From NCBI GenBank assembly GCA_965112735.1, contig OZ218955.1, forward strand, positions 868,001 to 932,000: 64,000 bases of DNA. Direction: 5' to 3'. Positions 4,291 through 64,000 of the stretch are shown here, one piece after another; position 1 is the first letter of the stretch; every line of letters starts with the position of its first letter. The notes below the pieces were generated by a model. It was not told the origin of the DNA. It did not search any database and saw only the letters and a program-made list of their open reading frames with translations. This stretch comes from Phaeosaccion multiseriatum (taxonomy: Eukaryota; Protista; Ochrophyta, other classes). The translations under genes and the position numbers were made by a program.

Positions 4291-4794
4291 GCGGGTTATA
4301 GTGCTCAAAGAATCGCTTGGAAGAGGTAGCCAGCCCAAGTTCCTGTTCACTCTAAAGGAGATGGAGAGGCTGAGGAGGCTCTCACCAAGAGCCCAGGTGC
4401 GTGGCAACGGTGAGGCCGTGAATAAACCCGCGTGAGCGATAAGCAGCAAAAGACTCTCGATGTTGGCTGTCCGATTGTCAAGTTGTCAGCTCAGCCACTG
4501 ACATCCTTTGCATCCTCACATGGGACATACACCACTTATCGACTGACCAACCCTCTCCCTACCTCGCTTGGACTCGCTCGCTCTGCCCTCCTGCACTCTG
4601 CCCCTAGGCCAACCGTCTCTATAACAGGCTGGAGAGGGCGGCCATAAGCGCCGAGGTGAGCGGCGAGACGAAAGCTTTATTCACGATGTTACCGCTCGTC
4701 GCGGGGCTTAGCGCGCTCTCGCTCGCTCCCAGCAGCCACGCTCCGTTCCATCCGACTGCTGTATCCGCGTACCACGACGCTCTACGACGTCTCT

Positions 4795-5703
4795 ATGTCT
4801 CACCAGGACTCGCCCAACCTCACTCAGGCCCGCTCTCCCTCCCTCCTCCCTCCCTCCCCCCCTCGCTCGGTCTGCCTTCAGGCTCATCACCTCTGTGACA
4901 CCATCGAGAGAGGGCGAAGTCGAGGCAGAATCAGAGCAGCTCTGAGGGCATACGTCGCTGAGCAAGGAGGGAAGAGGGCTTGCCTGGAGAAGGCCATCAA
5001 TGATGATGGATTCACGCCGATGGTTCTCGCTGTGCTGGACAGGCCCGACGTTGTCGACCTTCTGCTCGAGGAGGGAGCCTCTCCGAACACACGTGCAGGC
5101 TGCCAGGACGACTCCCCCCTTGGCATTGCTTGCTACCACGGCAAGGGCGAGGTGGTGGATAAGCTGCTCTCCGCAGGTGCAGCAGTCAACACACCAAGCG
5201 GGCGAGGGGACTTGTTGGCCCTTCAACAGGCTTCCATGGAGGGCCACGTTCACCTTGTGCCAAAGCTACTTGCAGCTGGAGCTGACCTTGAAAAGCGTGA
5301 TCGACAGGGGTGGACTGCGCTGCACCATGCCGTCTTTTGGGGCAGGCTCTCCGTTGTTCGGAAGCTTGTCGCCGCTGGGGCACGCGTAGATGCAATGACT
5401 CCCGAAGTGTGCACCTTGATCGGTCCCGGAGGTATGTCGCCCCTGTGTATGGCACGCTTCCTTGAGCACTGGGCGGTGGAGCACGCACTGCTCTCGGGAC
5501 GTCGAAGCTCTTCGCCATTTCCGCGATATGTAACCACAGCAGTTCAGGCCTGCTCGCTCCTGCTGAACCCGGTGCAGCAGTTGCTTCACCACAGCAGCGT
5601 CGAAGAGTTTGCGGTTGAGAGGGTCGTCCACGCCCACAGCGAGCTTCACCAAGGACGGCAGCACGGGGATGGTCCCGAAGGAGCGCTGGTGAGGAGGGCA
5701 TGA
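4795..5703 (+). CDS. Ankyrin-repeat protein (true start uncertain)
   Basis: About five ankyrin units: GFTPMVLAV, DSPLGIACYHGKGEVVDKLLSAGA, ALQQASMEGHVHLVPKLLAAGAD, GWTALHHAVFWGRLSVVRKLVAAGA, GMSPLCMA. Confidence 0.8.
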   Translation: MSHQDSPNLTQARSPSLLPPSPPRSVCLQAHHLCDTIERGRSRGRIRAALRAYVAEQGGKRACLEKAINDDGFTPMVLAVLDRPDVVDLLLEEGASPNTRAGCQDDSPLGIACYHGKGEVVDKLLSAGAAVNTPSGRGDLLALQQASMEGHVHLVPKLLAAGADLEKRDRQGWTALHHAVFWGRLSVVRKLVAAGARVDAMTPEVCTLIGPGGMSPLCMARFLEHWAVEHALLSGRRSSSPFPRYVTTAVQACSLLLNPVQQLLHHSSVEEFAVERVVHAHSELHQGRQHGDGPEGALVRRA

Positions 5704-7065: not shown

Positions 7066-8391
7066 ATGTTGCGGGCCTCTGTGAAGGTCTCGGCAGCAGG
7101 GAAAACCTTCGCACGAAGCGTGAGCACGACGCGGCTTGTAAGGAACAGGCCAGAGTCTTTGCAGGCCCCCGTCACTCTCGATTCGTTTACTCCATTCTTT
7201 CAGGAGAGGCGTCCCTGCGTGTTGCGAGGCCTGGCAAAAGAATGGCCTGCTGTGCAGCGATGGAGGGAGCTTGATTACCTCAGAGCAGTTGCATCTTCTG
7301 CAGGAGAGGCAGGCGCGATGGAGCCCTTCTGCAGGCTCGAAATGGGTGAGACTTGCAGGCTTTCACCCTGGCCTTGGGAGCTGAAGTCTGTGTGTGAGAA
7401 CAAGCCCTCCCCCATACCTGATTAATTTTCATTGTGTTGATCTTCCTTGTGTTTGGAGAAGCACCCTCTGTGTGGGGGGAGGCGACTCCCCCCTAAAAGC
7501 GATAATGCGGCTGACTTCTTTGGGCTGACTCATTGCTTCGCTCTTCCAGGCAAAGACTACAGTGACCCGGCACTGCAAGTGGTGGAGGCCCCCTTCCTCA
7601 GCTTTGTCGACTTCTTAGAGCTTGCCCGAGAGGAATGGGAGCAGCAGCAGCAGCAGCAGCAGCAGGAGCAGCAGCAGCAGGAGGAGGAGGAGGAGAGGGA
7701 GGAACCAGCAGTGGTGGGAGGAGGGGGGGGGAAGAGGGCAGGTGGCGGCAAGCAGACCCCAACAACCCCGCTCGTGTACCTGGCCCAGCAGCAGCTGTTG
7801 GAGGTGCTACCCGAGTTGAAAGGCGACATTTTCCCTCCTAACCACCTCATGGACGGACTGGGGAGGGAGCTTCTCGTCGAGAGAGAGAGAGCGGGGGACG
7901 AGGAAGCTCGCACCGCGCAGCAGCAGCAGCCACAGTACAAAACACGGGCAAAGGGTAATCTGCATGCCTGCAATGCGTGGATGGGTCCTTCGGGCACCAC
8001 GAGCTCTCTCCATCACGACCCGTACGACAACTTGCTGGTGCAGTTGGTGGGTCGAAAGCGAGTGCTCCTCTTTCACCCTCGACTCACGCCCTTCCTCTAC
8101 CAGGGAGGCGTTCGGGCAGCGCCAGCAGCAGGAGGAGGAGAGCGGGGCGCGCAGCAGCATTTTCAGATTCCTAAGGCAGCGGCGGCGGTGCTAAGCAACA
8201 CGTCAGCCGTGGACCCCCGGGCCCCCGATGCGTCCCTTCATCCTCTGTACCTGTCCTCGGCGCAGGGGGAGGCGCAAGAGGTGGTGCTGGAGGAGGGAGA
8301 CGCGCTCTACATTCCCATCAAGCATTGGCACTTTTGCGAGGCCCTGCCGACGGCTCCCATGTCTTTCTCCGTCAACTTTTGGTGGAGGTGA
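7066..8391 (+). CDS. JmjC/cupin-8 2-oxoglutarate-Fe(II) hydroxylase (JMJD5/JMJD7/FIH-like)
   Basis: Exons 7066-7345 and 7550-8391. Motifs: PCVLRGLAKEWPAVQRW, YLAQ, NAWMGPSGTTSSLHHDPYDNLLVQLVGRKRVLLF, LEEGDALYIPIKHWHFCE, SFSVNFWW. The HxD...H triad is intact. Confidence 0.92.
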
Positions 8392-18978: not shown

Positions 18979-25385
<6,407 letters not shown>

Positions 25386-25655: not shown

Positions 25656-27116
25656 ATGCCTGCGGTAATGAAGCGCCGGATAATATCGCCTCTGGTAGTG
25701 CTGTGCTGCCTCTGCTCCTGCGGTCATGGCTTCACGTTCAGCAGCATAAGCAACAGCAGAGTAGGATCGCCGCGAAGGTCTTCAGTAGTCGCCCGGGCCA
25801 CCTCCCCCGCAGCAGCTGAGGCACGGGAAGCAGCAGTGGCACCAGAGGGAGCGAGCAGGCGAATGTCGGTGGGACGAGGCAGCAGGAGCAGCAGCAGTAG
25901 CAGCAGCAGAAGAGACTGGATACGCCAAGCTGTGTCGGCGGGCTCGGTGGCCGCAGGAGTCGGCGCAGTAATAGTAGGCGGCGCGCCAGAGCAGAGCTGG
26001 GCAGAAGGGGGGGGTATCGGGGGGTTCCTGCAGAAGGCGGTGGAGACTGTCTCAGGGGGGGGGGGCGAGGAGGGGGGGGAGGACGCGCGCAAGCCTCTCA
26101 AGGTGGGGCAGGCACCAGAAAGCGTCACCAGCACCATCACTTACAAGGACTTTGTGAATGATTTGTTTGAGGGCAAGATTGAGAGCGCGCAGTTCTACGG
26201 CTCGCAGCTGGAGTCGTGCGTCGTGACCTTTAAGGACGGGGGAGAGCAAGCTCTCATCGGCGAGGGGTAAGTACTTTGTTTTTTGTGTGTGGGGGGGGAG
26301 GGAAAGGAGGGCCGCAAGCAGACGGGGTGGAGAGAGCAATGCGCGGGGTAGAGTGAGAGGAAGGGGTGGGGGTCGGGTGGGAGGCATAGCTGGACGGGAT
26401 GCCCCCTTCGATCGCTCGACGCGAGAGGACTACTCCCCTACCTGTCGAGTGCGGCCCCCAACACCCGAACACCTTGCATGCGTGGCAGATGTGGTGTGTG
26501 ATGCTTAAGTGTGATGCTTTTGTGTGATGCTTTTGTGTGATGCTTCATCCTACCCCGTCTCTACTCTCTACCTCCTATTCCGCTCTACAACTCCGCCCTC
26601 GTGTGCCGGTCTATATCGTATTCCCCCTCTCTTTCCCAGCAACACGCCGCCTTCCTTTCTCCCCTCTGCGTCCTCCCCCATCCTTCCCCCGTGGGGTCTG
26701 CATCAGTTTGCGTCTCCATCCTGCTGCTGCTCTTGCTCCTCCTGCTGCTGCTGCTGCTGCTGCTGCTACCAACTGCTACTAACCCCTCCCGCCCTCCTCC
26801 CCCTATCCTCCGCCCACCTGCCTGGCTGTCTGCCTGTCTGCCTGTCCCCCCCTCCCCCTTTCCCCGTCTTCCGACGCTCGCTCCCCCAACCCTCAACCCC
26901 CTCCGCAGCTACCCCCGGCCCGCCCCCACAACGGATGAGTCCCCCTATAAGGTGGTGAGTCAGTTACGAAACGCCGGCGTGCCTTACAAGTCGTCCTTCT
27001 CGCTGGGCAAGAACGTTTTACCGCCCTTCCGTACAGGGGACGAGGCGGCGGCTCGGGTGAGGCAGAGCGATGAGGAAAGGGAGATCGACGAGATGATGGC
27101 GAGGAGGCGGCAGTGA
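25656..27116 (+). CDS. Predicted thylakoid-lumen protein resembling the N-terminal lumenal domain of FtsH, with no AAA or protease part
   Basis: Exons 25656-26266 and 26909-27116. Signal peptide ends GHG|F, followed by an S/R-rich transit peptide, then RRDW + hydrophobic stretch + SWA (TAT-like), then ITYKDFVNDLFEGKIESAQFYG...VSQLRNAGV. Confidence 0.7.
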
Positions 27117-37683: not shown

Positions 37684-39318
37684 TTAGAGCTGGAGCGTCC
37701 TCTTGAAAGCGATGGATGACTTGCCCGTGTCCTCGAGAGGAATGTTGCCCGCCACTGTCCAGTTGTTGCCCTCCTTGAACTCCCAGTCTACGTTGGTCTT
37801 GCAGGCGGTCACCTCGATGGCGCCCTTTCCATCCTCGAGGTCACGGTTGAGTCGCACTGACACGTCTCCGCTCTTGAGGTCGAACTTGGGTGAGATCCTG
37901 TGTGTGTGTGTGCGTTAGGAGTTGGTTGGATTCGTTGTGGGTTACGTGGAGAAGGTGAGAACAGAAAGAATGTACTGAGAAAGCAGACCCGGAGCACGAG
38001 TACGACGAGACTTGTCGAGTTGACTCGCTTTCCCCTACCACCAACACAACCTTCATGTCTACCCAAAGCAGCAGCAGAAGCAAGCCAAGCACCACCAATT
38101 AATCGTCGATCAACCACATCAGTCTAACCTGTTGGAGTCGTCCAGCTTGTGCGACACCTCCACCACCACACTCTCGTCCCGCTGGTCCAGCGTCACCTCA
38201 GCCGTGGTGTCGGGTCCGTCGAGCTCCGTGTTGACGACAACAAAGCCGGTCTTCTCCTGCACGTTAACAGTGGGCTCAATGACGACTCGGCGTCCGTCCA
38301 TGTCCAGCTCCTTGTGAATGCGCACCGGCCCCACGACGTTGGTAGCGGTGTCGTAGTCGACGGTCACAGAGTCCTCTCCTTGGTTCAAGGTGGCCTCCAC
38401 GACGGTGGCCTTGGACTCCAGGTCGTACTGTTGATGGCGGTGTGGTTCGGGCAGACAAGAGAGCAGAAGAAGAACAAGAAGAAGATGTTAGTTGTCCGTT
38501 TGAAAAAATCAGACAAAACCCCTTTGGGGTGATGTGGCTGGCTGTGCATGAGGGCGTACACGCAAGAGACTTTGCGTACTCGCAGCAGCGTGATGCAATG
38601 ATCGAACACCGTATCCAACTACCAAACCATTGGCCCAAATGCGCAACGTTCTCTGCTAAGATTCTGAGGCTCAGCAACGCCGCTCGGCTGCGAGATTGCC
38701 GTCGCTGTTGCTGCACTGCGACTACTACGCTGCAGCAGTGCGATGCCTCGCTGCTGCGGCCTCTATACCAATTGTGCGAAAGCTGAAGGGAAAAGGACCA
38801 GTTCTCTGAACCCATGACCCAAACATACAGAACGCCCAAGATTCCTACTGCAGGAGCAACGGCATGCACCCGCACCGCTTTGCCCGCTGTGCCACCCCTA
38901 TTGCTGCACGGCTTCCCCCCCCGCCCTACCCTTCCTCGGCCCTCGCGCCGCCGCTGCTGCCGCGCATGTTCTGAAAAAAACAAACTGCTAAAATCCTGAT
39001 GTTGAAGTTCATTTTCTCTCTCACCTCGGCCTTGATCTCTGCCGCAACATTGTTGCCCTCATCGATGTCAGTCTTGCCGCGCACCCACACCGAGGTGGGC
39101 AGGCCTCTTGCCTGGTTGTACCTGTACTCGACTCCTGCGTTCACGTTGTCCAGCACCTCGTGCTCCCATGTGCCCTCGAGGTTGAGGCTTCCTGCCCCAT
39201 CGGGAAGGGAAGCGTCGTTGATCTCCACGCTGAGGCGAGGCCCCTGGATGTTCTGCAGGTTTGCTGCGTTGGCCACTCCGAGGAGGGCGGTGAGGGTGGC
39301 GATGCAGAAGGTCTTCAT
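37684..39318 (-). CDS. Signal-peptide-bearing, all-beta, probable beta-barrel (OEP24-like?) protein
   Basis: Exons 39318-39025, 38427-38129 and 37897-37684 are in frame. Signal peptide MKTFCIATLTALLGVANA, alternating polar/apolar strands with short D/G turns, C-terminal strand SSIAFKRTLQL. The family assignment is an inference. Confidence 0.7.
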
Positions 39319-39660
39319 GGTGTAGGTAAAAAGTTGATTTGGATACAATTGATAATGAGCAGTGGCAGTGGCATTTGTGGCGTTGAAGGAAAATGGAAAA
39401 TGCGGACTTCAACGTCGATTTTGAAATCGACATTGAACCCCTCGGGTCTGCCACGCACAACCACACACGCCTCGCGCACACCCTCACACACACCCACACG
39501 CCTGCCGTACACACCCCCTGCTCAGGCCAAGGGCCCGAAATACCGAGGGAGCGAGAGAGAACCTGCACCATGGAGAGAAGTGAGAAGTAGCTTGCAGGAA
39601 TGAGGGGGCGAGAGAACGGCCAAGTGGTCGACCGTGCTATCGACGACCGCTTTCTCGATA

Positions 39661-46666: not shown

Positions 46667-49600
46667 TCATTTACTCGCCGCCTCCTCCTCCAGGGCCTCC
46701 CTGTGCTCCTTCACCAACTTGACCTGTAAGTCCCTGTTGACCTGTTGGTGCTTCGAATACTCCATGGTGTACTCCCCTTTACCCTGTGTCCCACTACGCA
46801 GATCCGTCGAGTACCCAAACATCTGCGCTAAAGGCACCTCAGCCTTGATGCAGCAGCTGCTGCCATCTTCGCTCACGTCCACCCCGTGCATTACCCCCAT
46901 TCGTTTGTTGATACCCCCGACGATACCTCCTTGGAAGTCGACGGGAGCGGTGATCTCAACCATCATCATGGGTTCGAGTACAGCGGGATTGGCTGGGGGG
47001 GGTGGGAGGGGAGGGGAGGGAAGGGAGAGAGGGAGGGAGGGAGGGAGGGAGGGGGGGAGGGATAAGGGGAGGAGAGGAGTGAGTGAGTGAGGGAGGGACG
47101 TAAGGGGAGGTTGGGGATGGCAGTGGATGGGGGCGACAAGCAGGCGGAGCAGGGGAGTGAGGACGTCCCCTGACCCTGCCCCTGACCCTGACCCTGAGAC
47201 CCTGCCCCTGACCCTGACCTTTACCTTCACCCTCACCCCTCACCCTCACCCTCACGCCTCACCCCCACCCTCAACCCTCACGCTCACCACTCCCTCTTCC
47301 CTCCCTCACCTTGGACCATGGCTGTTCTGACGGCGGCGGCGGAGGCGAAGCGGAAGGCCATATCGCTCGAGTCCACAGCGTGGGCAGCGCCGTCTTGGAG
47401 AACCACCTGTTGTATGTATGTAGAGGTGGAGGGGCAGGGTCAGGGCCAAACCGAGAAGAGGCGAGGAGGCAAGGAAGAGATGGAGTTAGTATGTACCCCA
47501 AGGTAGGGAAGTCAAGGATATGTACCCCGAGCATGCCTACATGCCCATAAAGGCCTACATGCCTATACGCCTCCATGCCTATATGCCTCCAGGATGCCTC
47601 CATATGCCTTCATGATGCCTACATGCCAATAGGCCTCCATGTCTATATGCCTCCATGATGCCTCTATATGCCTTCATGACGCCTATATGATGCCTACATG
47701 CCTATAAAGGCCTCCATGTCTGTATGCCTCCAGGATGCCTCCATGATGCCCATAAGCCTTCCTTACCCTGAGGCCGTGCACCTCCTTGCCCAGCAGCCCC
47801 CCCTCCAGCCTCGCGTCATCAAAGCCCTTCATGCAAGAGGTTATGTACTCAGGGGGGATGTTCATGCCCACGCAGTGATTCTCGAACTCGTGGGTCACCT
47901 ATTGGGTGGTTGGTTGGAGGGGATGAGAGAGAGAGGGAGGTTGAGGGAGAGGGGGCGGGGTGAGGAGAGAGGGAGAGAGAGAGAGAGAGAGAGAGAAGAG
48001 AGACGAGAGAGAAGAGCGGGAATCTTGTTTGTACTTTTTAGTTTTACGTGACCTTAGCAATGTCGAACACCATACATGGAGTCGATATCGAAGCTTCTGT
48101 GTCTACTCCACTGTCTGACTCGAAACTGCCTCTGAAACTGTCCGACTCACCGGTGCTCCGTTGTCGTCCTTGGCGTTAATGTCGAGAGGCTCGATGAAAC
48201 CGATAACCTTGGCGTACTGCCCGGAGCCGCCCGTCTGCTTCTTGTGCAGGTACGTGAAAGAGGCCTTCTTGTTGATGGCCTCTCTGTAGTTTACCTTGGG
48301 TGCCCCCACCACCACGTTGACCTGTTGGTTGTGTGTGTGTGTGTGTGTGTGTGTGACATGGCAAGGGCCTTTACTCGATATCCCTTGGTAATCCAAAAAT
48401 ATCGGATCCAAAAAGTCGAAATCACGGAAGGACACTGCTGGCTCTCTGCCGCTCTTCCTTCTGTGCTCCTCCCTCCCCCCCCTCCCCCCCATCCACTGCC
48501 ATCCCATCCCTCACTCACGTTGTACTCCCGCTTGAGCCGCTCCACATAGACATCGAGATGAAGCTCTCCCATGCCGCTCATTATGGTCTCTTTGGTGTCA
48601 AGGTCGGTGTGGATGCGCAGGGTGGGGTCTTCACGAGTGAACTTCTGTAACGCCTTTCCAAAGTTGTCCAGGTTGGCGTCCTTTTTTAGCATTTCAGATG
48701 ATTTGGGTTCATCATTTTGAGGCCCGGTAGAGGGGAGGGGAGGGAAGCCGAGGGGCAAAACGTAAGTGCCAAGCAATGCGAACAGAAGAAAGGACACGAA
48801 GCGGTGTATGTGTGCGTGCGTGCGTGCGTGCGTGCGTGTGCGTGTTCCCCCCTCCCTCCCCTCCCTCCCCTCCCTCCCTCCTCCCCTCTGTTATCACCGA
48901 CTCGCTCACCTTGTCGGGCTTGACGGCCAGGCTCATGACTGCCTCAGGCACGTACATGCTGGTCATGGCGAGGTTGTGTGTGCCATCTGTGAAGCTGTCC
49001 ATGGAGGAGCAGTCCACTCCGAACATCGCGATGACGTCACCCGCCCCGCACCGGTCAACCTAAATTAAGAGTTTTCAGTGTCAGGTTTCTGGTAGTTCGA
49101 ACGTATCGAACACATTCATATGGTATCGGTGTCGACACGCTTGGCCAAGAGCTCACGCACTCACTCACTCACCGCTCACTCACTCACGCACTCACTCACT
49201 CACCGCTCACTCACTCACGCACTCACTCACTCACCGCTCACTCACTCACTCGCTCACTCACTCACTCACTCACTCACTCACTCACTCACTCGCTCACTCG
49301 CTCACTCACTCACTCACTCACTCACTCACTCCCTCCCTCACTCACTCACTCACTGACCACTCACTCACTCACGCACTCATTCACTCACCTCCTGCATCTC
49401 GTTGGAGTGCATGCGCACTACTCGAGGCACCTTGACCTGTTGGTGATTCATTCGTTTGTTTTGTCAGTTGTAAGTTGTAAGTTGAGAAGAGAGAGAGGTC
49501 TGACACGAAAATCCGATACTACTATTCATCACAATACCAAGATGGATGTCGATACTGAAATCGATGTGCTCGATACCGCTCCTGCTTACTTACCGACTTG

Positions 49601-49708
49601 CCCGTGTTGAGGTTGGTGATGGTGCAGCCCTTGGAGATGGTGCCCTGCAGCAGTTGGTGATACAGCAGCAGCAAATGGGTGATACAGCAGAAGCAATTGG
49701 TGATACAG

Positions 49709-49747
<39 letters not shown>

Positions 49748-50087
49748 ACTGTACTCACTGACCCACTCCTTGACCGATCGACGACTGACCTACCTGGTAT
49801 ATCCGCATGTACGTGAGCTGCCCGTACTGCCCCTCCTCCAGCTTGAAGGCAAGGGCAAGCAGAGGCGCGTCGCTGGAACACACCACAGGCACTTGGGCCT
49901 CGCCAGCCGTCTGAGGGGAGGAGAGGGGGGTACAAGACAGGCATATGGGCAGGGCATGTGGGCAGACAGCCAGACAGACAGTCAGACAGACAGACAGTCA
50001 GAAAGAGGCATATGGGCAGGCAGGCAGACAAGACAGACAGACAGAGAGACAGACAGACAGAGAGATAGACAGACATATATACATACG

Positions 50088-50127
<40 letters not shown>

Positions 50128-53100
50128 GGCAGACAGACAGAGAGAGAGAGACAGTCAGACAGACAGAGACTTGGGCAGACGGACAGGGACAAGTAAGACG
50201 GAGAGACCATACGGTACATAGGACAGGGGAATATAGGCAGGGAGACAGGCAGACGGACAGCAAAGCAGGTAGGCAGGCAGGCAGGCACGTAGGCAGGTAG
50301 GAAGGCAGCCAGTACATGGGCAGGTTGATACGCCAGACGGACAGACAGAAGAAAGTAGCAGACAGCGGCAAGGCGTGACAGACCTTACGCACTCCCCCCC
50401 TCCCCTCCCTCCCTCTCCCTTCCCCCCCTCCCTCTCTCCTTCCCTCCCTCTCTCCCTCACTCACTCACTCACTCACCGTGTCCAGCGCGAAGTTTGGTAC
50501 CTCCTCGGGGCAGGGAAGGTAGTCAATAACACCGTCCAACAGAGGCTGCACGCCCTTGTTCTTGAACGCCGATCCCATAAACACGGGGCAGAATTTACAC
50601 GCAATGGTTGCACGCCGAATGGCAGCCTGGGGAGGGGAGAGAGGAGGAGAGGAGGAGGAGGAGGAGGAGGAGGAGGAGGAGGAGGAGGAGGAGGAGGAGG
50701 AGGAGGAGGAGGAGGAGGTGAGAAAGGGAGGGGGGCGAGGCGGGAGGAGGAGGCGGAGATGACGAGGGACACCATGGGAACGCGGATGAGAGTATGCGAG
50801 TGTCTTTCCTTTCATTCCATAATAGAGGGTCTTTCTTCCCATGTGTCTTTCCTTCCATTCGCGCACTCTCGCGTGAAGAAAGTCGCTGCCAGCTGTGCGT
50901 AGCTGCCGTTGCTGCTCTTGCTGCTACCGGCAAGCGCCGACGCCCTTCTTGCTTTCTTACCTTAAGTGTGTCTGTGTCGATTTCTTCCTCCATGAGAAAC
51001 AGTTCTCCGATCTGTTTGGAAGTCCGTGAGGGGAGGGGAGGGAGGAGAGGAGAGGGGAGGAGGAGGGGGGACACAGGAAATGGGAGGAGAGGGGAGGTGA
51101 GGGAAGGTGAGGGGAGGTGAGGGGGGAGAGAGGAGAGGGTGCAGGCACACACGCACGGATACACACACATGCACGCGCAACCACAGCACACACACGCTCG
51201 TACACACACACGCACGCACGCACGCACGCACGCACGCACACACAAACACCGCGCCCAGCCCCCCACACACACACCTCTTCATCCACGTCCGCCACCCGCT
51301 CGATGACCTCTTGTCTGGCGGTGAGGGCCTCCTGAGAGAGGAGGTATGCAGCGATAGGGGAAGGCAGGCATCATGCAGTCACATGGGCACAGAGCAGCAG
51401 GCAGATGAGCAGCAGCAGCGGCGGCGGTGGTTCAACGGGTCGAGGGGGCCATGAAAAGAGAGGTGCCTAAGAAGGTTCCGTGGAAGTTCTCTCTCGCTAA
51501 TAAGCGTGACCCCAAGTGCCACACCCTAGACCCCAAACCCAACCCCCAAACCCACACACATGACTACATACTTAATCACACACACGCACACACATACACA
51601 CACATGACTACATACTTAATCACACACACGCACACACATACACACACACACACATGACTACATACTTAATCACACACACGCACACACATACACACACACA
51701 TGACTACATACTTAATCACACACACGCACACACATACACACACACCTGCTGGTACTCCTCCGGCACAGGCCCCTCTGTGACGGTTTCGCCCTTCTCTCCC
51801 TCAAAGCTGAAGGATCGCATGTCGATTATGTCAATGACACCTTGGTGCCTGTCCTCCAGACCCATGGGAAGCTGCACCGCTGCTGCGTTGAGACGGAGCT
51901 GAGAGCGCAGATCGCCGATGACCTGGAGAGCAGGGGGGGGGAGGGAGGGGAGGGAGAGGGAGAGAAACAGAGTGAAAGATCGAAGGGGATAGAGAGACAG
52001 GGAGAGAGAGTGAGACAGAGAGGGAGGGAGCAAGAGTGTGAGAGAGGGAGAGGAGAAGGAGAGCGAGGCACAGCGAGTGAGGAATGACGGGGAAGGTTAC
52101 CGCATTTTACCTTGTGAGCACCACGCGTATATCCATCTTGAGTACATCTTTCGCGGACTGCTCCTACACACTCACGCACCCACAGACACATGCACGCACG
52201 CGCGCACCCACCCACCCACACCCACCCACACACACGCACACAAACGCAGACACGCACACTCACTCACACACGCACACACACACACTCTCTCTCACACACA
52301 TACACCAACACACACACACGTTCCCTCTTACCTTTGACGGACTGGCCCCGGAACGGTCGAGTTTATTGACGAAGGCGAGGCGCGGAACACTGCCCAGGGA
52401 TGTGCGGCACACGTACGTAAGAAGAAACGTAAGGGGTGAATACGAGGGGTGAGAATACGATAAGGGGTGAAAGAAAAGAGTGAGTGTACTTCCTCCTCTT
52501 GTTTTGTCTGTCTGTCTCTCCCGCCCCCTCTCTTACTTGTATCGCTTCATCTGTCTGTCGACGGTGAGGGACTGACTCTGCACGCCAGAGACACCACACA
52601 GCACCAAAATGGCCCCATCCAGCACTCGGAGAGCACGTTCCACCTTCAGTATTCACAGATGGCAGAAGATGGCCGTAGAGGGGGGAAAGGGGGAAGAGAT
52701 ACAATACAGACAGACGGGGGGGAGGCGAACACATTGTAGTAGAGGGAGGGTATCGAGTAGAGCTTGGGTGAGAGAAAGGGGAGGCAAGGCAACCTGGCGT
52801 GGTGTGCGTGCGTGCGTGAGTGAGTGAGTGAGGGTAAGTGAGTGAGGGTAAGTGAGTGAGTGAAGGAGTGAGTGAGTGAGTGCGTGAGTGAGTGGGTGAG
52901 TGAGTCGGTGGGTGAGCGTGAGTGAGTGAGTGAGAGAGTGAGGTGGCAGGTGGGTGAGTGACTGAGTGAATGAGTGGGCGTGTGAGTGAGTGCGATGGGG
53001 CATAGGCTCTAGCACGCACACACGCACGCACGCACGCACTCACCTCAATGGTGAAGTCAACGTGTCCCGGTGTGTCAATGATGTTAATGTGCTTGTCGCC

Positions 53101-54102
53101 CCACTCGCAGAATGTGGCAGCCGATTGAATGGTGATGCCCTTCTCTCGCTCGAGGTCCATGCTGTCCATCTTCGCGCCTGTGTTGGTGGGAGGGGGTGGG
53201 GAGGGAGGGGGTGGGGAGGGAGGGAGGGAGGGAGGGGGGAGAAGGGGGGCAGGGAGAGAGGGAGAAGGAGACGGACAGAAAGGTAAGACAGGTACGGAAG
53301 AGAGAAAAACACGGCACACACACACACACGCCCACCCACACACACACACACGCACACACGCACACACACGAACACACCTACTCCATCCTTGCCCCGAACG
53401 TCGTGAATGGAGCCAATCCTGCCCGTGTAGAATAAAATCCTCTCTGTGAGGGTGGTCTTGCCGCTGTCAATGTGGGCGGAGATGCCAATGTTGCGAGTGG
53501 CTTGCATGTGCTTATCCAAGGGATGACCAGCGTCGTCGTCATCTGCTTCTGCTGCTGCTGACGCGGACTTTGAGCGGACTTGCTGCTGCTGGTGTGGGCG
53601 CTGCAACGAGTGCCGGGACGGAGACAAGAGGGCGACAGAGCTGGTGGACCTGCGCGTGTGTGGATGCCACACGAGTGAGTAAGAGAGGACGAGGAGAAGG
53701 AAGGAGGGGGGGGTAGAATGACGAGCGAGAGGCGCGAGCTACGTTGGCGAGAGAGAAAGCCTACCGCAAATCACACGTCAAGTATGCCGGCATAGTGCTG
53801 TGAATAGGATCGAAAGCAGAGTTCTTCCCGCGCTGCTCATCATACATCCATCAGTGTCTGCGTGCTTACCTTCTCCCCCATGGCCCTCGCTGCGTCGGTG
53901 GGCGCAGGGACGACGCAAAGGAGTGCAGCGGACAGCAGTACGATGATGAATGATGAGATGCCCTGTACTGGGCAGCTGCAGGCGCTACTCCTTCGTGGCA
54001 TTGCTGCGGCTGCTGCCCCTGAAGTAGTGAAGCAGCCGCCTGTAAGCGACTACCGCTGCTGCCACGCCGAGGACACGAAGTGGCGCGTGCGAGCCGCCAC
54101 AT
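46667..54102 (-). CDS. GFM1: Mitochondrial translation elongation factor G1
   Basis: 18 exons: 54102-53870, 53649-53378, 53177-53044, 52643-52537, 52389-52332, 51922-51746, 51331-51275, 51011-50961, 50626-50477, 49910-49794, 49644-49594, 49436-49389, 49059-48910, 48680-48519, 48321-48151, 47898-47767, 47406-47310, 46992-46667. Motifs: [94 protein letters not shown]. Confidence 0.96.
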
Positions 54103-55999: not shown

Positions 56000-56365
56000 C
56001 TACAGCACCGCAGTAATGACTAGCATAGCCGGGACCATGAGGATGGTGCCGAGCACGAAGCTCCTCGCAATCACCTCCGTACCCAGCCCGTAATTCTTGC
56101 ACAGAGTAAAGCCCGACACCGCCAGCGGCAGGGCGGCAATAACTACAAACACCTGCCTGACAAGCACCTCCCTCTCTTCCTCCCCCTCCCCCCCCTCCTC
56201 GAGAAGGAAGCCGCCCAGGCCCCAAGCCACCACGGGCAGTAGGGCAAGCTTGTAGAGCACGTAGCATCCCACGAGGGCCCAGCCCGTGCCCGCGGGATGG
56301 GGGCGCGCTTGATGGTAGTCGACGGTGGAGGGTGCAGGAGGTTCCTGCTCCTCCTCCTCATCCTC

Positions 56366-56403
<38 letters not shown>

Positions 56404-58113
56404 GCTGTATCACCATCCGCTGCCCCTGCTGCCGTCGTGTTGTTGGCAGGAGCGCTATGAAGACCCCTACGGTCACGGCGGCAAGCGGGGTCACTGTAGC
56501 AGCGAGCCAAGAGAGGCCGTTGTCGAGGTATGAGGGGAGGGAGTACGGCGGAGCTGCTCCGCCCCCATCCACCGTCGTGTCGCGACGGCTCGTAATGAGA
56601 CCGCTCCACGCCAAGCCGGCGAGGATGCCCAGGACAGGGGGCAGGGAGAGCACGCGTGTTGAAATCCGCCAGGCGAGGGAGCGTCGCCAAAGCTTGACGC
56701 CCTGTACGTTGGGGAGGAAGGGAGGGAGGAGAGAAAGGGAAGAAAGAGCACTCGTTAGGTGGTGGGGTGGGGTGGAGAGGGGATCGAGGCTACGCCAGAT
56801 GGCACCCAGCGGCTGGGGGTGCACGCACAAGGCTGCCTGTCGAGGCAGAAAGTGCACGAAGCAATAGAGGGGAACGAACCTTCTCCCCGGCTCTGCCTTG
56901 GCTCTGCCGGCCGCTGCTGCGACTCTCCTGCTGCCCACTGCTGCCTGAGCCCCCTCCTCTCGCCACTCCTTGTGGTGGCAAATGCTCCTCCTCCTCCTCC
57001 TCCTCCTCCTCCTCCTCCTCCTCCTGCTCCTCCTCCTGCTGCTGCTGCTGTCCCCCGCTCTCTTCGTCCTCCTCCTCCTCCCCTTCCTCTGCGTGTAGTT
57101 CTCTTTGTAGCGCCCTCCACTCGAAGAGAGTGAGCATGAGAGGCAGCTGGAAAATGAAGCTGCTGATGGATGCAAGTACGCAGTACACAGCATACTCCTT
57201 TCCATACACGGCCTGAGAGAGAGAGAAAGAAAGGGAGAGAGAGAGAGGGAGAGGGAGAGAGAGGGAGAGGCTTGGCCAATGGTTTGAAGCGAGACAGGAC
57301 AAAGTCAGTCCATCCAAAGGGCAGAGAAGGCAAGACAGTAAATCCAAAGGGCAGCAGGGAGCCAGCGAGCAGACGACGTCACCACGAACGCACGCACTTG
57401 TTGGCCAGAGCGACGACAGGATGCACTGGCCCAGTAGCAGTAACAAGCGCTCGCTCTCTCACTCAACGCGTTTACTGCCCACGAGAGAAAGAAAGCAAAT
57501 GGATTTTACTTACCGTGACTATGGGGATGCCAAAGATGATGGTGTTATAAAAACTGCCCCCAAGGAAGTGCAGAAGGAAGTGGCCCACAGCATCAGAGGG
57601 CAGGCCGGCTGTAACGACAAGCATCGAATTATCACTCTCCTTTCCTCCGTTCCGGCATTGCTGCTGTTGCGCAGTCGGTACTGCCCTTGCCCTCACTCTC
57701 TTTTGCATTGGGTTCACCCTAAACCCCCCCCGCCTCTCTACCATGTCTTGTGATTGCTGTCCCTCCTTTTCTTTCCTCCCCTCTGCAGCCGCCGGCCAGA
57801 CCGAGGCGGGCAAGTGAATAGACCCTATCGTGGCAAGAACAGCGATGGCGCACGCCACCAAACGAAGCACCAAGAAGGACACCAAGAAATTCCAATAACC
57901 GAGCGCTTCATACTGCTGGACTTGTTGGATGGCGAGGAGGCGAAACACCGCGGCTGGCACACCAATCAAGAAGACGAATTTGTTCAATGTGCGCAAGCTT
58001 TCTGTGCCGAACATGCCCACCCTACCGGTCACGTAGCCTATCAAGATAAGGGCCCACAAGCTGACTCCAACCTTGAGTAGCGCTTTCGCCTCATTCAAGC
58101 TCTGCTCTGACAT
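56000..58113 (-). CDS. AEC (auxin efflux carrier / malate permease, Mem_trans) family transporter
   Basis: Exons 58113-57514, 57212-56880, 56701-56000 (all phase 0). Motifs: LILIGY..LNKFVFLIGVPAAVF, NTIIFGIPIV, PPVLGILAG, TPLAAVTVG, KLALLP, ALPLAVSGF. Confidence 0.9.
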
Positions 58114-58324
58114 CCTCTGCGTTTGTTGTTCTTTTGCCCTCCACCTTCTCACAACTTGAAGCTGAGGATGTGGTTCTCCTCCTCAACCAAATGGCGACTA
58201 CGACTGGCTCTTTGATCAATTCCACGTGATCAATTCCTTCTCTTCAAGGATCGGCGCAGCCTGGAGAGAGGAAGCTCAAGAGAACAGTGGAGGAGAAGAG
58301 TTGTTTCGCCTTGTGGTTCCATCC
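58114..58324. promoter_or_regulatory. Putative bidirectional promoter/5'UTR region between the AEC transporter and hydA
   Basis: Only 211 bp separate the divergent ATGs. Contains a direct repeat TGATCAATTCC x2 (58213-58237) around a CACGTG. Confidence 0.5.
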
Positions 58325-61300
58325 ATGCTGATTTCCCGCTTGAAGGCAGGGAACAAAGGCTATTACTTTCGCAGCAGCAGCCTATGTGGTGTGCGATGCG
58401 GTGTCTCTTCTCTGTCGTGGCGGGATTGGTGGAACCAGGAGAAGAAGGGAGACGATAAAGATGATGAAGATGGCCCGTTGGAGAAGAAAGGGCAGCAGGA
58501 GGGGGAGAAGGAAGTGCACTTTGTGCTCAATGGCCGCAGAGTGAGCGGTGCGGGAACAATTCTCTCTGTGGCAAGGGAGAGGGGGTTAAGCATACCGACC
58601 CTTTGCTATCACCCACGGCAACCGTCGAAGGGGGTTTGCCGCCTTTGCTTAGTTGAGGTGGGTATTGCCTCAGAGCTCTACTAGGGAGGCTGCCTTCCGC
58701 CCCCGCCCTCGGGCGGGCCTCTCCAACTCTCTGCGACGACGAAGTGCATGGTTGCCCTTTCTGCGTTGTATACTCTAAGGGGCACCGACTCCCCGACCGA
58801 TTGTCTGACTGTCTGCCTGTCCCACTGCCTGACTTCACTCCTTCACCCCCCCGCCCCTCCCAGGTGCAACAGCCAGGCCAGGGCAAGAGCCCTCCAAAGC
58901 TGCTTCCTGCTTGCAAGGTAGGCAGTCTTAGGTAGTGCTTGCCAGCAGTGGCTTTGCTCGTTTCTCCGTCGATCGTCGGACAGCAATTTCGGCTCTTACC
59001 CCCCTCCACTCTCTGTCCACTTCTGCCCCTCCCCTTTCTGCGTCGCTCTTTTCCGACTCTCCCATTTCGCTTCTTTCTGCTCCACTCCCTCCCACCTATC
59101 CTTGATTGCCATCTGCCGCGACTGCCCAACAAACACAGACGGCCGTAGGCGAGGGGATGAAAGTGACGACCAACTCCCCTCCAATCCGCGAGGCAGTCAC
59201 AAACAACCTTTGCTTCATCATGCGGACCCACCCCCTCGACTGTTTCAAGTGCGAGGCCAACGGGACGTGCGAACTCCTGGCCCTCACTCAGCGTTACCTT
59301 GGACCGAGAGATTGGGCGAGAATACATGAACCTGAGGAGGAGGAGGCAGAGGAGGAAGAGGAGGAAGAGGAGGAGGGAGGATTTCGGCGCTCGTTGCTGC
59401 AGGGGGCGTTGGCGGAGAACAAGAAGCAGGCTGCGGCTGAGGCTGCTGAGGGTTTGATGATGGAAAGCAGTCCTGCACTGACTCGGTATGCAGACAAGTG
59501 TATCAAATGCGGTAGGTGAGTGGGTGAGTGAGTGAGTGAGTAAGTAGTGAGAGAGGGAGAGTGTGAGTGAGTGAGTGAGTGAGTGAGTGAGTGAGTGAGT
59601 GAGTGAGTGAGTGAGTGAGTGAGTGAGTGAGTGAGTGAGTGAGTGAGTGAGTAAGTGAGGGAGTGAGTGAGTGAGTAGTGAGTGAGTAAATGAGTGAGTG
59701 AGTGAGTGAGTGAGGGAGGGAGGGAGTGAGTGAGCGAATGAGTGAGTGAATGAGTGAGTGAGTGAATGAGTGAGTGAATGAGTGAGTGAGTGAGTGAGTG
59801 AGTGAGTGAGTGAGTGAGTGAGTGAGTGAGTGAGTGAGTGAGTGAGTGAGTGAGTGAGTGAGTGAGTGAGTGAGTGAGTGAGTGAGTGAGTGAGTGAGTG
59901 AGTGAGTGAGTGAGTGAGTGAGTGAGTGAGTGAGTGAGTGAGTGAGTGAGTGAGTGAGTGAGTGAGTGAGTGAGTGAGTGAGTGAAGAGTCACTGGCATT
60001 GGTTGGTAATGGATGGTTGGATGTCACCTCTTTATTATCTAAACGGACGGATGGCCACCAGAGTCTCACCCTGCATAACAGAATAACCGTCACGTGCGTG
60101 TTGGTACTTCGCACAGGTGCATCACAGCATGCGAGCAGCAAGGGATGGGGCTATTGCATTGGGCAGGGAGGGGGGAGAACATGCACATCGTTGTCAGCAG
60201 CCCAGACCACAGGACCAGGAGGAGGACTGAAGCTCAAACTGAACCTGGGATGACGAGGGACGAGGAGGCAGAGGAGGAGGCAGAGGAGGAGGAGGGGATG
60301 GAGGTGCCACTGAACTACTCGGTGTGCTTAGCGTGTGGACAGTGTAGTGCGGTGTGCCCGGTAGGGGCCATTGTACCTCGCTCAGAGCTACGGAGCGTTA
60401 TGGACTTACTGGACAGCGCGGTGGGTGAAGAAGACGATGAAGAGGAGGAGGATGATGCTGAGAAGAAGGCAAGAGTAAGGGAGTCCTGGCTGACAGCTGG
60501 CAGGAGTGACAGCGACAAGGAGCAGCTCGAGCAGCGGCAGCAGGAGCAACAGGAGAAGGAGCAGACGAAGGGAAAACTAGGAAGAAGACTAAGAAGAAGG
60601 CCGATTACCATCGCCGCCATAGCCCCTGCTGTACGAGTGGCCATTGCGGAAGAGTTCGACCTTCCCCCCGGGGCCGTGCCGCCGGAGCAGCTGGTGTCAG
60701 GACTGAAACGCCTGGGCTTTGACGAAGTATTCGATACGAACTTTGCTGCGGACTTGTGTATCGTGGAGGAGGGGAGCGAGTTCATAGACCGACTCCGAGA
60801 GAATGGCCTTCTTGCCACCAATGGGGCAGCAATTGGTGATACAGAGCACCCACAGGCGAGGGAGAAGGCGGCTCTGCCCATGTTCACATCGTGCTGTCCA
60901 GGTATCGTACACGCTTCGTCTGATGTATTACGTAGTATTACATCTTGTCTTACGTTGCTTTGCTCTCTGCTCTTTGCCTGACTGACAACAGACGGAAGGA
61001 CTGACTGGCCTTCCCCCTTCCGGTCTAGCGCCTACTCGTCTACTCGCACAGCCTGACTCACTGCCAAACTGATTCCCTGCATCACTGCCTTACTCCCTGC
61101 CTCGCTGATTTACTTATGACATTGCCATACCCTTCCTGCCTCACTGTGTGATGACAGCGTGGGTGAACATGGTGGAGCAGGAGTATCCCGAGCTTATTCC
61201 GCACCTCTCTTCCGCCAGATCGCCACAGGGCATGATGGTAAGTTGGTGATACAGGGTATGATGGCAAGTTGGTGATTCGTTGATTGGCAGGCAGTGTAGT

Positions 61301-63957
61301 CCGACTCCGAGTGATGATATTTGCGCACTCCCTTCCTCCCTCTCTCCGTCCTTCTGCCTGACCCACACATACCATTCCTCGCTCCCGCTCTGCTCTGCAC
61401 TGCACCGCATCACCAACTGCTCTACCTGCTCCTTAGGGCTCCATGGTGAAGAGCTTCTACGCTAAGAAGAGGGGCCTCTCGCCCGATGACATCACCCTCG
61501 TCTCCATCATGCCATGCACCGCAAAGAAGCAAGAGGCGGACAGAATGCAGGTAAGAAGAGTACGTGGAACACCGTACTGTCGACGAAAGGTGCCATCTGG
61601 TCAGACTGTAGGCTGCCATCTTGTCGTCCTTGCTTGACTTGACTTTACTCTGCTGCCAGCTGTCACACACACACAACACACACATACAATCAATCACATA
61701 CACACACGCGCGTGTCTCCCGCTGGAGTACTGTCCTTAAAAGCCCCCTCCCTCCCCTCCCCTCCCCTCCCTAGCTGTGGCATGAGACCAACTTCGTGCTA
61801 ACGACACGCGAACTCGGCCGTCTCTTTCGCATGAGGCACATCCCCTTGACCGCCCTCCCTGAGACGCCCTTCAGTGACCCCCTCGGAGAGTCAACGGGGG
61901 CAGGCGTTATATTCGGGTACGTGTCGTAGGTTAAGTTGCGAGATGGGGGTGAGGAGAGCGGGGTGCGTGTGTGCGTACGAGTATGTGTGCGTGCGTGCGC
62001 TATTGCTGGTGGTGCGTCTGGCTTGATACTCCTTTGGGTTTCCTTCCCCTTGTTCCCACCACACCACATCCCACGAAACCACATCACACCACATCACATC
62101 ACACTACAGCGCCACAGGAGGAGTGATGGAGGCCGCCCTCAGGACTGTGTACGAGATACTCACGGGCACAGCCATGGTAAGTAAGATTAAGTAAGCATGG
62201 TCTCTCTGCCTCGCACTGGCATACCCATGGTAAGGAAGCACAGGCTCTGTCTCTATCTTTGTCTCTGCGTCTCTCTCTGTCCACCCCTACCTTTCTCACG
62301 GACATTCCATGCTCGCCTTCCTTCCTTCCTTCCTTCTTTCCTTCCTTCCTTCCTTCCTTCCTTCCTTCCTTCCTTCCTTCCTTCCTTCCTTCCTTCCTTC
62401 CTTCCTTCCTTCCTTCCTTCCTTCCTTCTTTGCTTGCTTCCTTCCTTCCTTCCTTCCTTCCTACCTACCTTCCTTCCTCCATCCCCTTCCTCCCTCCCTT
62501 CCTTCCTTTTCTTCCTTTCTTCCTTCCTGCCTGCCTTCCTTCCTTCTTGCCTCGCTTCCTTCCTCCCCTCATTTCTCTCGCCCGTTTCCCTCACACGCAG
62601 GCGGACTTGAATCTGACTGCCGTGCGTGGCTTCGAGGGGGTGAAAGAAGCCCCTCTCTGCCTCAAGCTTAAGCAAGCAGCAGACCAACACAAGGAGGAGG
62701 AGAAGGAGGAGGAGAAGGAGGAGGAGAAGGAGGAGGAGAAGGAGGAGGAGAAGGAGGTGGTGCTGAAGGTAGCGGTGGCGCACGGTGCCAAGAACGGCCG
62801 CATACTGGCGGAGAGGGTGTTGCAAGCCGTGAGGGAAGGCACGCCGCAGCCTTACCACTTGATTGAGGTGAGTCCTGAGGCCGGGGAGTCCTGGATACCC
62901 TGCCCATCGCCTGCCCATCGCCTGCCATTCCCTGCCATCCTCTCTCATCCGCTGCCATCCCCTGCCGCCTTACCGCCCCCTCTCCATCCCTCTGCCATTC
63001 CTCTGCCATTCCTCTGCCATTCCTCTGCCATCCCTCTGCCATCCCTCTGCCATCCCTCTGCCATCCCTCTGCCATCCCTCTGCCATCCCTCTGCCATCCC
63101 CCTGCCATCCCCCTGCCATCCCCCTGCCATCCCCCTGCCATCCCCCTGCCATCCCCCTGCCATCCCCTGCCATCCCCCTGCCATCCCCTGCCATCCCCTG
63201 CCATCCCCCTGCCATCCCCTGCCATCCCCTGCCATCCCCTGCCATCCCCTGCCATCCCCTGCCATCCCCTGCCATCCCCTGCCATCCCCTGCCATCCCCT
63301 GCCATCCCCTGCCATCCCCTGCCATCCCCTGCCATCCCCTGCCATCCCCTGCCATCCCCTGCCATCCCCTGCCATCCCCTGCCATCCCCTGCCATCCCCT
63401 GCCATCCCCTGCCATCCCCTGCCATCCCCTGCCATCCCCTGCCATCCCCTGCCATCCCCTGCCATCCCCTGCCATCCCCTGCCATCCCCTGCCATCCCCT
63501 GCCATCCCCTGCCATCCCCTGCCATCCCCTGCCATCCCCTGCCATCCCCTGCCATCCCCTGCCATCCCCTGCCATCCCCTGCCATCCCCTGCCATCCCCT
63601 GCCATCCCCTGCCATCCCCTGCCATCCCCCTGCCATCCCTCTGCCACCCCCCTGCCATACCTCTGCCACCCCCTGCCACCCCTCTGCCATCCCCTGCCAT
63701 CCCCTGCCATCCACTGCCATCCCACACCATCCCCTGCCATCCCCTGCCGCCTTACCGCCGCCATCCCCTGCCATCCCTTGCCATCCCCTACCATCCCCCT
63801 GCTACCCTCTGCTATCCTACTGCCATCCCTTTGCCACCCCCTGCCATTTCTCTGCCACCCCCTGCCACCCTAGGTGATGGCCTGTTCCGGTGGTTGCTTG
63901 GGGGGGGGCGGTCAGCCCAAGTCGCAGGATCCTCAAATCCTCCTCAAGCGGGCACAG
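58325..63957 (+). CDS. hydA: [FeFe]-hydrogenase, group A, CpI-like F-domain + H-domain; 3' end lies beyond the window
   Basis: Exons 58325-58657, 58864-58917, 59139-59515, 60117-60901, 61158-61237, 61437-61550, 61774-61916, 62110-62176, 62601-62867, 63874-63957. [2Fe-2S]: IPTLCYHP..CRLCLVE..PAC. His-ligated cluster: HPLDCFKCEANGTC. 2x[4Fe-4S]: CIKCGRCITAC and CLACGQCSAVCP. H-cluster motifs: FTSCCPAW, MPCTAKKQE, EVMACSGGCLGGGGQP. Also GVIFGATGGVMEAALRT. Confidence 0.95.
59516..59985. repeat. (GTGA)n tetranucleotide array starting at a hydA donor site
   Basis: Direct reading. Confidence 0.95.
62320..62560. repeat. (CCTT)n tract in a hydA intron
   Basis: Direct reading. Confidence 0.9.
62900..63870. 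repeat. 10-11-bp minisatellite (CCCCTGCCAT)n filling a hydA intron
   Basis: Perfect core at about 63200-63620 with degenerate flanks reaching the acceptor at 63873. Confidence 0.95.
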
Positions 63958-64000
63958 GTACGATAGAACCTCTCTTGTCCTCTCTTGAAACTGAAATTGG

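Follow-up and report, generated by a model that had tools for sequence, protein, structure and literature searches.

The locus described here raises the question of the compartment in which an [FeFe]-hydrogenase would work in a photosynthetic cell. Research on algal hydrogenases has dealt almost wholly with the plastid enzymes of green algae, and no determination of the compartment of the catalytic subunit, HydA, in algae with complex plastids was found in the literature. The window analysed is a stretch of 64,000 nucleotides from the ochrophyte Phaeosaccion multiseriatum (assembly GCA_965112735.1, contig OZ218955.1, positions 868,001 to 932,000), and positions below are those of the window. 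At 58325-63957 on the + strand it carries an intact nuclear gene for HydA, of the M3 layout with a full four-cluster F-domain and, by prediction, functional. That the product is a mitochondrion-directed M3 hydrogenase making H2 under dark anoxia or hypoxia is a reading to which we assign a probability of roughly 0.5. The most useful new fact is that the gene belongs to a conserved transporter-hydrogenase pair.

The hydrogenase gene

The gene was rebuilt from the DNA by translating the + strand in three frames and by setting the splice sites on the donor and acceptor strings located in the sequence. When joined, ten exons give a single uninterrupted reading frame 768 residues long:

58325..58657, +, exon 1: start codon, 64-residue N-terminal extension and first half of the 2Fe-2S domain; Fer2_4; donor GTGGGT
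58864..58917, +, exon 2: fourth cysteine of the 2Fe-2S cluster (LLPAC)
59139..59515, +, exon 3: His-ligated 4Fe-4S motif, acidic low-complexity insert, beginning of the first ferredoxin-type motif; NADH-G_4Fe-4S_3
60117..60901, +, exon 4: both 4Fe-4S ferredoxin motifs, two acidic inserts, H-domain from its start to P1 (FTSCCP); Fer4, Fe_hyd_lg_C
61158..61237, +, exon 5: AWVNMVEQEYPELIPHLSS...; 71 % identity to the metagenome contig L001 (see below)
61437..61550, +, exon 6: P2 (MPCTAKKQE)
61774..61916, +, exon 7: Fe_hyd_lg_C match; translated-DNA match to L001
62110..62176, +, exon 8: ATGGVMEAALR
62601..62867, +, exon 9: (KEEE)n insert
63874..63957, +, exon 10: P3 (MACSGGCLGGGGQP); donor GT directly after it, at 63958

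All introns have a GT donor and an AG acceptor, and no gaps were seen at the exon junctions upon alignment to an orthologue that lacks introns and to two enzymes of green algae. As exon 10 is followed by a donor, the C-terminus lies beyond the window; in relatives this part is a small-subunit-like domain of ~60-100 residues, and a Fe_hyd_SSU domain is present in two orthologues, P0039 and P0163. An earlier note, made from the letters of this DNA, had described an intron-rich gene of at least ten exons with four accessory FeS motifs and P1-P3, and the rebuilt gene, in which all ligands were found, bears this out. The interval that it gave runs exactly from the first ATG to the end of exon 10, and the N-terminus that it quoted is identical to the product of the first in-frame ATG.

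The spliced protein carries 16 of the 16 ligands of the accessory clusters FS2, FS4C, FS4A and FS4B. The plant-type 2Fe-2S cluster would be held by C95, C106, C109 and C128 and the His-ligated surface 4Fe-4S cluster by H162, C166, C169 and C175, while two CxxCxxCxxxC ferredoxin motifs occupy residues 250-260 and 324-334. The H-cluster motifs, tested with the patterns TSCCPxW (P1), MPCxxKxxE (P2) and ExMACxxGCxxGGGQP (P3), are intact and read FTSCCPAW, MPCTAKKQE and EVMACSGGCLGGGGQP; both the proton-relay cysteine of TSCCP and the Lys and Glu of MPCxxKxxE are kept. Searching Pfam exon by exon returned Fer2_4, NADH-G_4Fe-4S_3 and Fer4, together with Fe_hyd_lg_C on three exons (PF02906 on exons 4, 6 and 7, with E = 1.6e-22, 1.3e-9 and 4.3e-7, respectively). 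Exon 4 is also matched by TIGR02512, and its best matches among solved structures are [FeFe]-hydrogenases, with Chlamydomonas HydA1 at the top.

Four low-complexity inserts, either acidic or composed of Lys and Glu, lie within exons 3, 4 and 9. They are in frame and rich in Glu, Lys and Gln, whereas the introns are rich in stops, and they are putative coding sequence. The hydrogenase-like segments at 57000-64000 are set apart by CT-rich spacers filled with microsatellites. Three introns consist nearly entirely of micro- or minisatellite sequence, namely (GTGA) x118 at 59516-59985, (CCTT) x63 at 62316-62564 and the 10-mer (CCCTGCCATC) x94 at 62898-63867, and the KEEE insert of exon 9 is made by a coding repeat, (AAGGAGGAGGAG) x5.6.

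Class and relatives

The enzyme had been called CpI-type, which is apt for its domain layout (M3) and not for its sequence. The window protein was scored against curated models exon by exon. For every exon piece from the window, and for each orthologue, the Thermotogae-type group A6 model NF040763 outscored the clostridial CpI model NF040762, with 123.6 against 87.1 bits for exon 4 and 742 against 500 bits for P0039. All pieces and orthologues remained far under the 900-bit cut-off of NF040762, and P0039 and P0163 came just below that of NF040763 (742 and 758 against 765 bits). Judged by its sequence, HydA belongs to a eukaryotic/algal and Thermotogae-like group and not to clostridial CpI proper. 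M3 enzymes are known in Chlorella and Uronema (PMC10744039), and published work joins the HydAs of algae, that of Nannochloropsis among them, in one group (PMC3897525). The HydA of the window is a further member of this group and no clostridial-type oddity. The view of F-domain enzymes as typical of anaerobes overlooked these algal enzymes (PMC10744039, PMC3897525) and is at the least overstated.

Close relatives are scarce. With exon 4 as the query, 1.84 billion representatives were searched, and the top identity was ~55 %; a metagenome scan returned matches of at most 54 % identity, most of them bacterial. Some of its loci stem from human-gut metagenomes; these are bacterial contigs and not human sequence, and they were left out. 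The nearest named proteins come from Cyanophora, Chlorella, a pedinophyte and Chlamydomonas moewusii, and a search started from Chlorella HYDA1 was dominated by green-algal M3 enzymes and Thermotogae. Identity to the algal M3 enzymes is ~51-54 % over 490 shared columns, and the H-domain is 58 % identical to that of a Micractinium HydA; in the trimmed H-domain alignment used for the first tree, P0039 is the closest sequence, at 56 %.

In a full-length tree, HydA falls in a clade with the green-algal M3 enzymes, Kosmotoga and eukaryote-like sequences (support 100/100), and an H-domain tree agrees. Several HydAs of this clade have short presequence-like leaders. The branching order inside the eukaryote and Thermotogae clade is poorly supported in both trees. 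A Cyanophora grouping was not adopted; its support was 93/69. The Cyanophora paradoxa entry of EukProt (P0001) is a predicted protein of 4,122 residues with seven hydrogenase-like stretches, probably tandem HydA genes that were merged by annotation.

The leader and the space upstream of it

The leader had been described as R/S/L-rich, free of acidic residues and without a signal peptide; the analysis found it basic, acid-free and devoid of a signal-peptide core. The first 33 residues include six basic and no acidic ones (charge +6). The first acidic residue is Asp at position 34, and from there an acidic and lysine-rich linker leads up to residue 65, where the 2Fe-2S domain begins. No hydrophobic core of a signal peptide was detected in the leader by a 9-residue hydropathy scan, the maximum being 1.23 as compared with 2.94 for the leader at 25656 and 2.29 for the protein at ~39318, which are signal peptides encoded in the same window. 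HydA does not carry the N-terminal signal peptide with hydrophobic core that marks a bipartite complex-plastid leader; an N-terminus of the presequence kind, rich in Arg, Lys and Ser and devoid of acidic residues, is present in HydA and in its two syntenic orthologues. The first of the two leaders used for comparison is the following:

25656-26267, +, first exon with a lumen-type leader: hydrophobic signal peptide, Phe, Ser/Arg/Ala-rich stretch, RRDW twin-arginine motif and a second hydrophobic stretch ending in SWA

This leader is of the three-part plastid/thylakoid-lumen type expected in algae with complex plastids. Because this lumen-type protein begins with a signal peptide, plastid import in this alga appears to use signal peptides. 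Further on, the gene gives a weak FtsH_ext match (E = 0.0018). The open reading frame (ORF) at 38929-39408 (-) starts with a secretory signal peptide of the classical kind (MKTFCIATLTALLGVANA); it also shows a faint match to an outer-membrane beta-barrel profile (E = 0.0069).

An upstream exon encoding a signal peptide was named in the earlier note as one of the findings that would overturn a mitochondrial assignment. The room for such an exon is limited by a divergent neighbour:

58114..58324, no strand, spacer of 211 bp between the divergent start codons, a presumed bidirectional promoter
56003..58113, -, divergent gene with several exons for a transporter of the auxin-efflux-carrier (Mem_trans) family, start codon at 58113; conserved partner of HydA

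The spacer holds two short upstream ORFs with ATGs at ~58148 and ~58191, both of which come to a dead end after 12-15 codons. The frame of HydA itself is open for 53 codons 5' of the ATG, and this stretch is acidic and contains no ATG. Plastid import of HydA is unlikely because a signal peptide is lacking and because just 211 bp are available for a hidden exon. The enzyme is probably not plastid-targeted and would work in the mitochondrion or the cytosol; a mitochondrial destination is plausible as the natural alternative to the plastid.

A conserved transporter-hydrogenase pair

The arrangement of the two genes is found again on two metagenome contigs. L001 (JGI 3300082588) is a 120-kb intron-poor eukaryotic contig that encodes P0039, with a Mem_trans gene head-to-head upstream of it, and L084 (JGI 3300073658), likewise eukaryotic and intron-poor, carries P0163 and a Mem_trans gene in the identical arrangement with a spacer of 120 bp. 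Translated searches (tblastx, tblastn) gave collinear matches for Mem_trans and HydA. In the intron-poor orthologues the spacers measure 120-503 bp, and the HydAs next to them have no signal peptide. The pair was absent from the loci checked in Chlorella and a pedinophyte (Pedinophyceae) and from two other metagenome loci.

The leaders of the two orthologues resemble that of the window HydA. In P0039 the ~96 N-terminal residues contain no Asp or Glu and no signal-peptide core, and because the L001 genome is AT-rich, with a GC content of 46 %, an open frame of this length is unlikely to have arisen by chance. P0163, encoded on a contig of 63 % GC, has an Arg/Ser-rich leader of 27 residues, also without a signal-peptide core. 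The new element is a head-to-head Mem_trans/HydA pair in three distant eukaryotes, in each of which HydA has a presequence-like leader.

The three syntenic HydAs are 47-51 % identical to one another, which is not above their identity to the green-algal enzymes. A clade uniting them is not rejected: the constrained tree came out 4.35 log-likelihood units above the free search, with a p value of 0.61 in the approximately unbiased test (p-AU). The pescadillo protein encoded on L001 groups with Rhizaria (SH-aLRT, a Shimodaira-Hasegawa-like approximate likelihood ratio test, 100). With the alga being an ochrophyte, the pair would span very distant lineages, which could reflect old conservation or transfer between eukaryotes. 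In the spacer of the window, GATCAATTCC is duplicated around an ACGT core (CACGTG box) at 58148-58230; CACGTG also occurs in the L084 spacer, although a 6-mer may recur by chance. No 7- to 9-mers are common to the three Mem_trans/HydA spacers.

It is tempting to see in the transporter and a mitochondrion-directed M3 HydA a two-gene module under one bidirectional promoter, conserved or laterally passed among very distant aerobic eukaryotes such as this alga and a rhizarian-like organism. Its presence would be the sign of mitochondria able to make H2 facultatively, and the task of the carrier would be to move the product of a coupled fermentation. We regard this proposal as doubtful for the present and put it forward tentatively.

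Mitochondrion, cytosol or plastid

According to the reading that we favour, the alga would import its plastid proteins by means of a signal peptide, and HydA, lacking one, would stay out of the plastid. The leader would most likely direct the enzyme into the mitochondrion, which is the weakest step of the proposal. There, in dark anoxia or hypoxia, HydA would reoxidise reduced ferredoxin by making H2; alternatively, its electrons might come from NADH through NuoE/NuoF-like partners. Co-expression with the neighbouring carrier from the common promoter may be part of the scheme. A precedent for a mitochondrial HydA in an aerobe is available from Acanthamoeba (PMC3785491).

Several observations weigh against this reading. 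Of 1000 shuffled versions of the leader, 914 attain its maximum 11-residue hydrophobic moment (0.41), and an R-2/R-3 processing motif could not be clearly recognised in it by eye. The putative coding inserts of exons 3, 4 and 9 also count on this side. All public runs in which the gene was found are genomic DNA, with contigs that span the introns and no splice joints, so that they contain no transcripts. A motif scan for maturase signatures (radical-SAM/HydF) found none in the window, which covers the window only and is not evidence of their absence from the genome. Finally, the hydrogenase of Naegleria was predicted to be mitochondrial and found to be cytosolic (PMC4007538). The "mitochondrial-type presequence" of the earlier note is retained for its composition and not for its helical moment or cleavage motif. 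Its H2-producing mitochondrion fares similarly: the real and intact gene, the missing signal peptide and the basic leaders of the syntenic orthologues speak for it, and the mitochondrial step is argued from composition only. The inference is reasonable, and what it draws on is the missing signal peptide together with the composition of the leader.

The main rival is a cytosolic hydrogenase as in Naegleria gruberi (PMC4007538), the leader of which would be one more low-complexity addition comparable to the acidic inserts. The amphipathic moment, which is no better than that of shuffles, and the presence of several lineage-specific low-complexity inserts in the protein would fit this view. However, three deeply diverged syntenic orthologues keep basic, acid-free N-termini in front of the 2Fe-2S domain, and the first 33 residues of the window HydA contrast sharply with the acidic stretch after them. 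A cytosolic enzyme is possible but, on balance, unlikely.

A second alternative concerns function. Without maturases, the product could be a hydrogenase-like protein with no role in H2 metabolism, either a redox or electron-transfer protein or a silent relic. Thalassiosira pseudonana has HydA but no HydEFG, and its H2 is barely detectable (PMC10407231). The motif scan of the window mentioned above and the purely genomic nature of the public runs agree with this alternative. Against it, the H-cluster ligands and P1-P3 are intact across ten exons without a frameshift, and Nannochloropsis, an ochrophyte, has HydA as well as HydE/F/G (PMC3499364). We consider a role outside H2 metabolism quite improbable. 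Least probable by far is a plastid enzyme that would be the counterpart of the plastid HydA of green algae and would take a signal peptide from an upstream exon so far missed or from a different start codon, since the similarity of its H-domain to green-algal enzymes, the open frame before the ATG and the purely genomic nature of the public runs are outweighed by the short distance to the divergent start codon, the acidic and ATG-free character of that frame, the dead-end upstream ORFs and the equal lack of a signal peptide in the intron-poor orthologues.

If HydA is indeed barred from the plastid route, an O2-sensitive reaction of the hydrogenosome type would take place in or next to the respiring mitochondrion of a phototroph, which bears on the persistence of anaerobic modules in aerobes. 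With the transporter-hydrogenase pair, co-regulation and the metabolite flux that accompanies H2 formation become open to concrete tests, and the pair provides a synteny marker for the history of HydA where trees give no order.

Other genes in the window

The remaining features are the following:

4660-5700, +, ankyrin-repeat gene
7441-8388, +, JmjC/Cupin_8 exon
20015-23046, -, ABC1-kinase exons
~48100-53500, -, multi-exon EF-G gene (motif AHIDSGKTT ... VRGKDGVG)

The EF-G is presumably of the mitochondrial type, judging by its G-domain motif. No relative with more than 43 % identity to the JmjC exon was present in a large protein collection. Among the companions of HydA listed in the earlier note, a mitochondrial-type EF-G and a lumen-type leader were recovered, and a complex I subunit was not found.

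Comparison with known systems

With CpI of Clostridium pasteurianum, the window HydA shares the M3 architecture and the cluster-binding motifs, but its gene is eukaryotic, has introns and an N-terminal extension, and scores better with NF040763. The model that fits best is that of the NADH-dependent HydA of Thermotogae group A6 (the alpha subunit of HydABC), with which it also shares a clade. These bacterial genes, however, have neither introns nor a leader, and the orthologues of the window HydA score just below the cut-off of the model.

A short basic leader on a HydA with several clusters is a feature of the mitochondrial and hydrogenosomal enzymes of Acanthamoeba, Trichomonas, Blastocystis and others, and the window HydA shares it; its host, like Acanthamoeba, otherwise has normal mitochondria (PMC3785491). 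Unlike these hosts, the host of the window HydA is photosynthetic.

The layout is shared with the algal M3 HydAs (Chlorella variabilis HYDA1/2, Uronema belkae HydA2 and Nannochloropsis HydA). They have the same set of 2Fe-2S, His-ligated 4Fe-4S, two 4Fe-4S and H-domain, are nuclear and intron-containing, and fall with it in a strongly supported common clade; Nannochloropsis shows that ochrophytes can have an M3 HydA (PMC3897525). The window HydA differs from them in its several long acidic inserts and in its leader without a signal peptide. In Nannochloropsis the maturase genes flank hydA in a hydA-hydE-hydF-hydG cluster (PMC3499364), whereas on the visible, upstream side of the window HydA the neighbour is the transporter gene and no hydE, hydF or hydG adjoins, the downstream side being beyond the window. 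No maturase genes stand beside the HydA orthologues on L001 or L084. At the Chlorella and Pedinophyceae loci the hydrogenase gene has no transporter neighbour, whereas that of the window has one.

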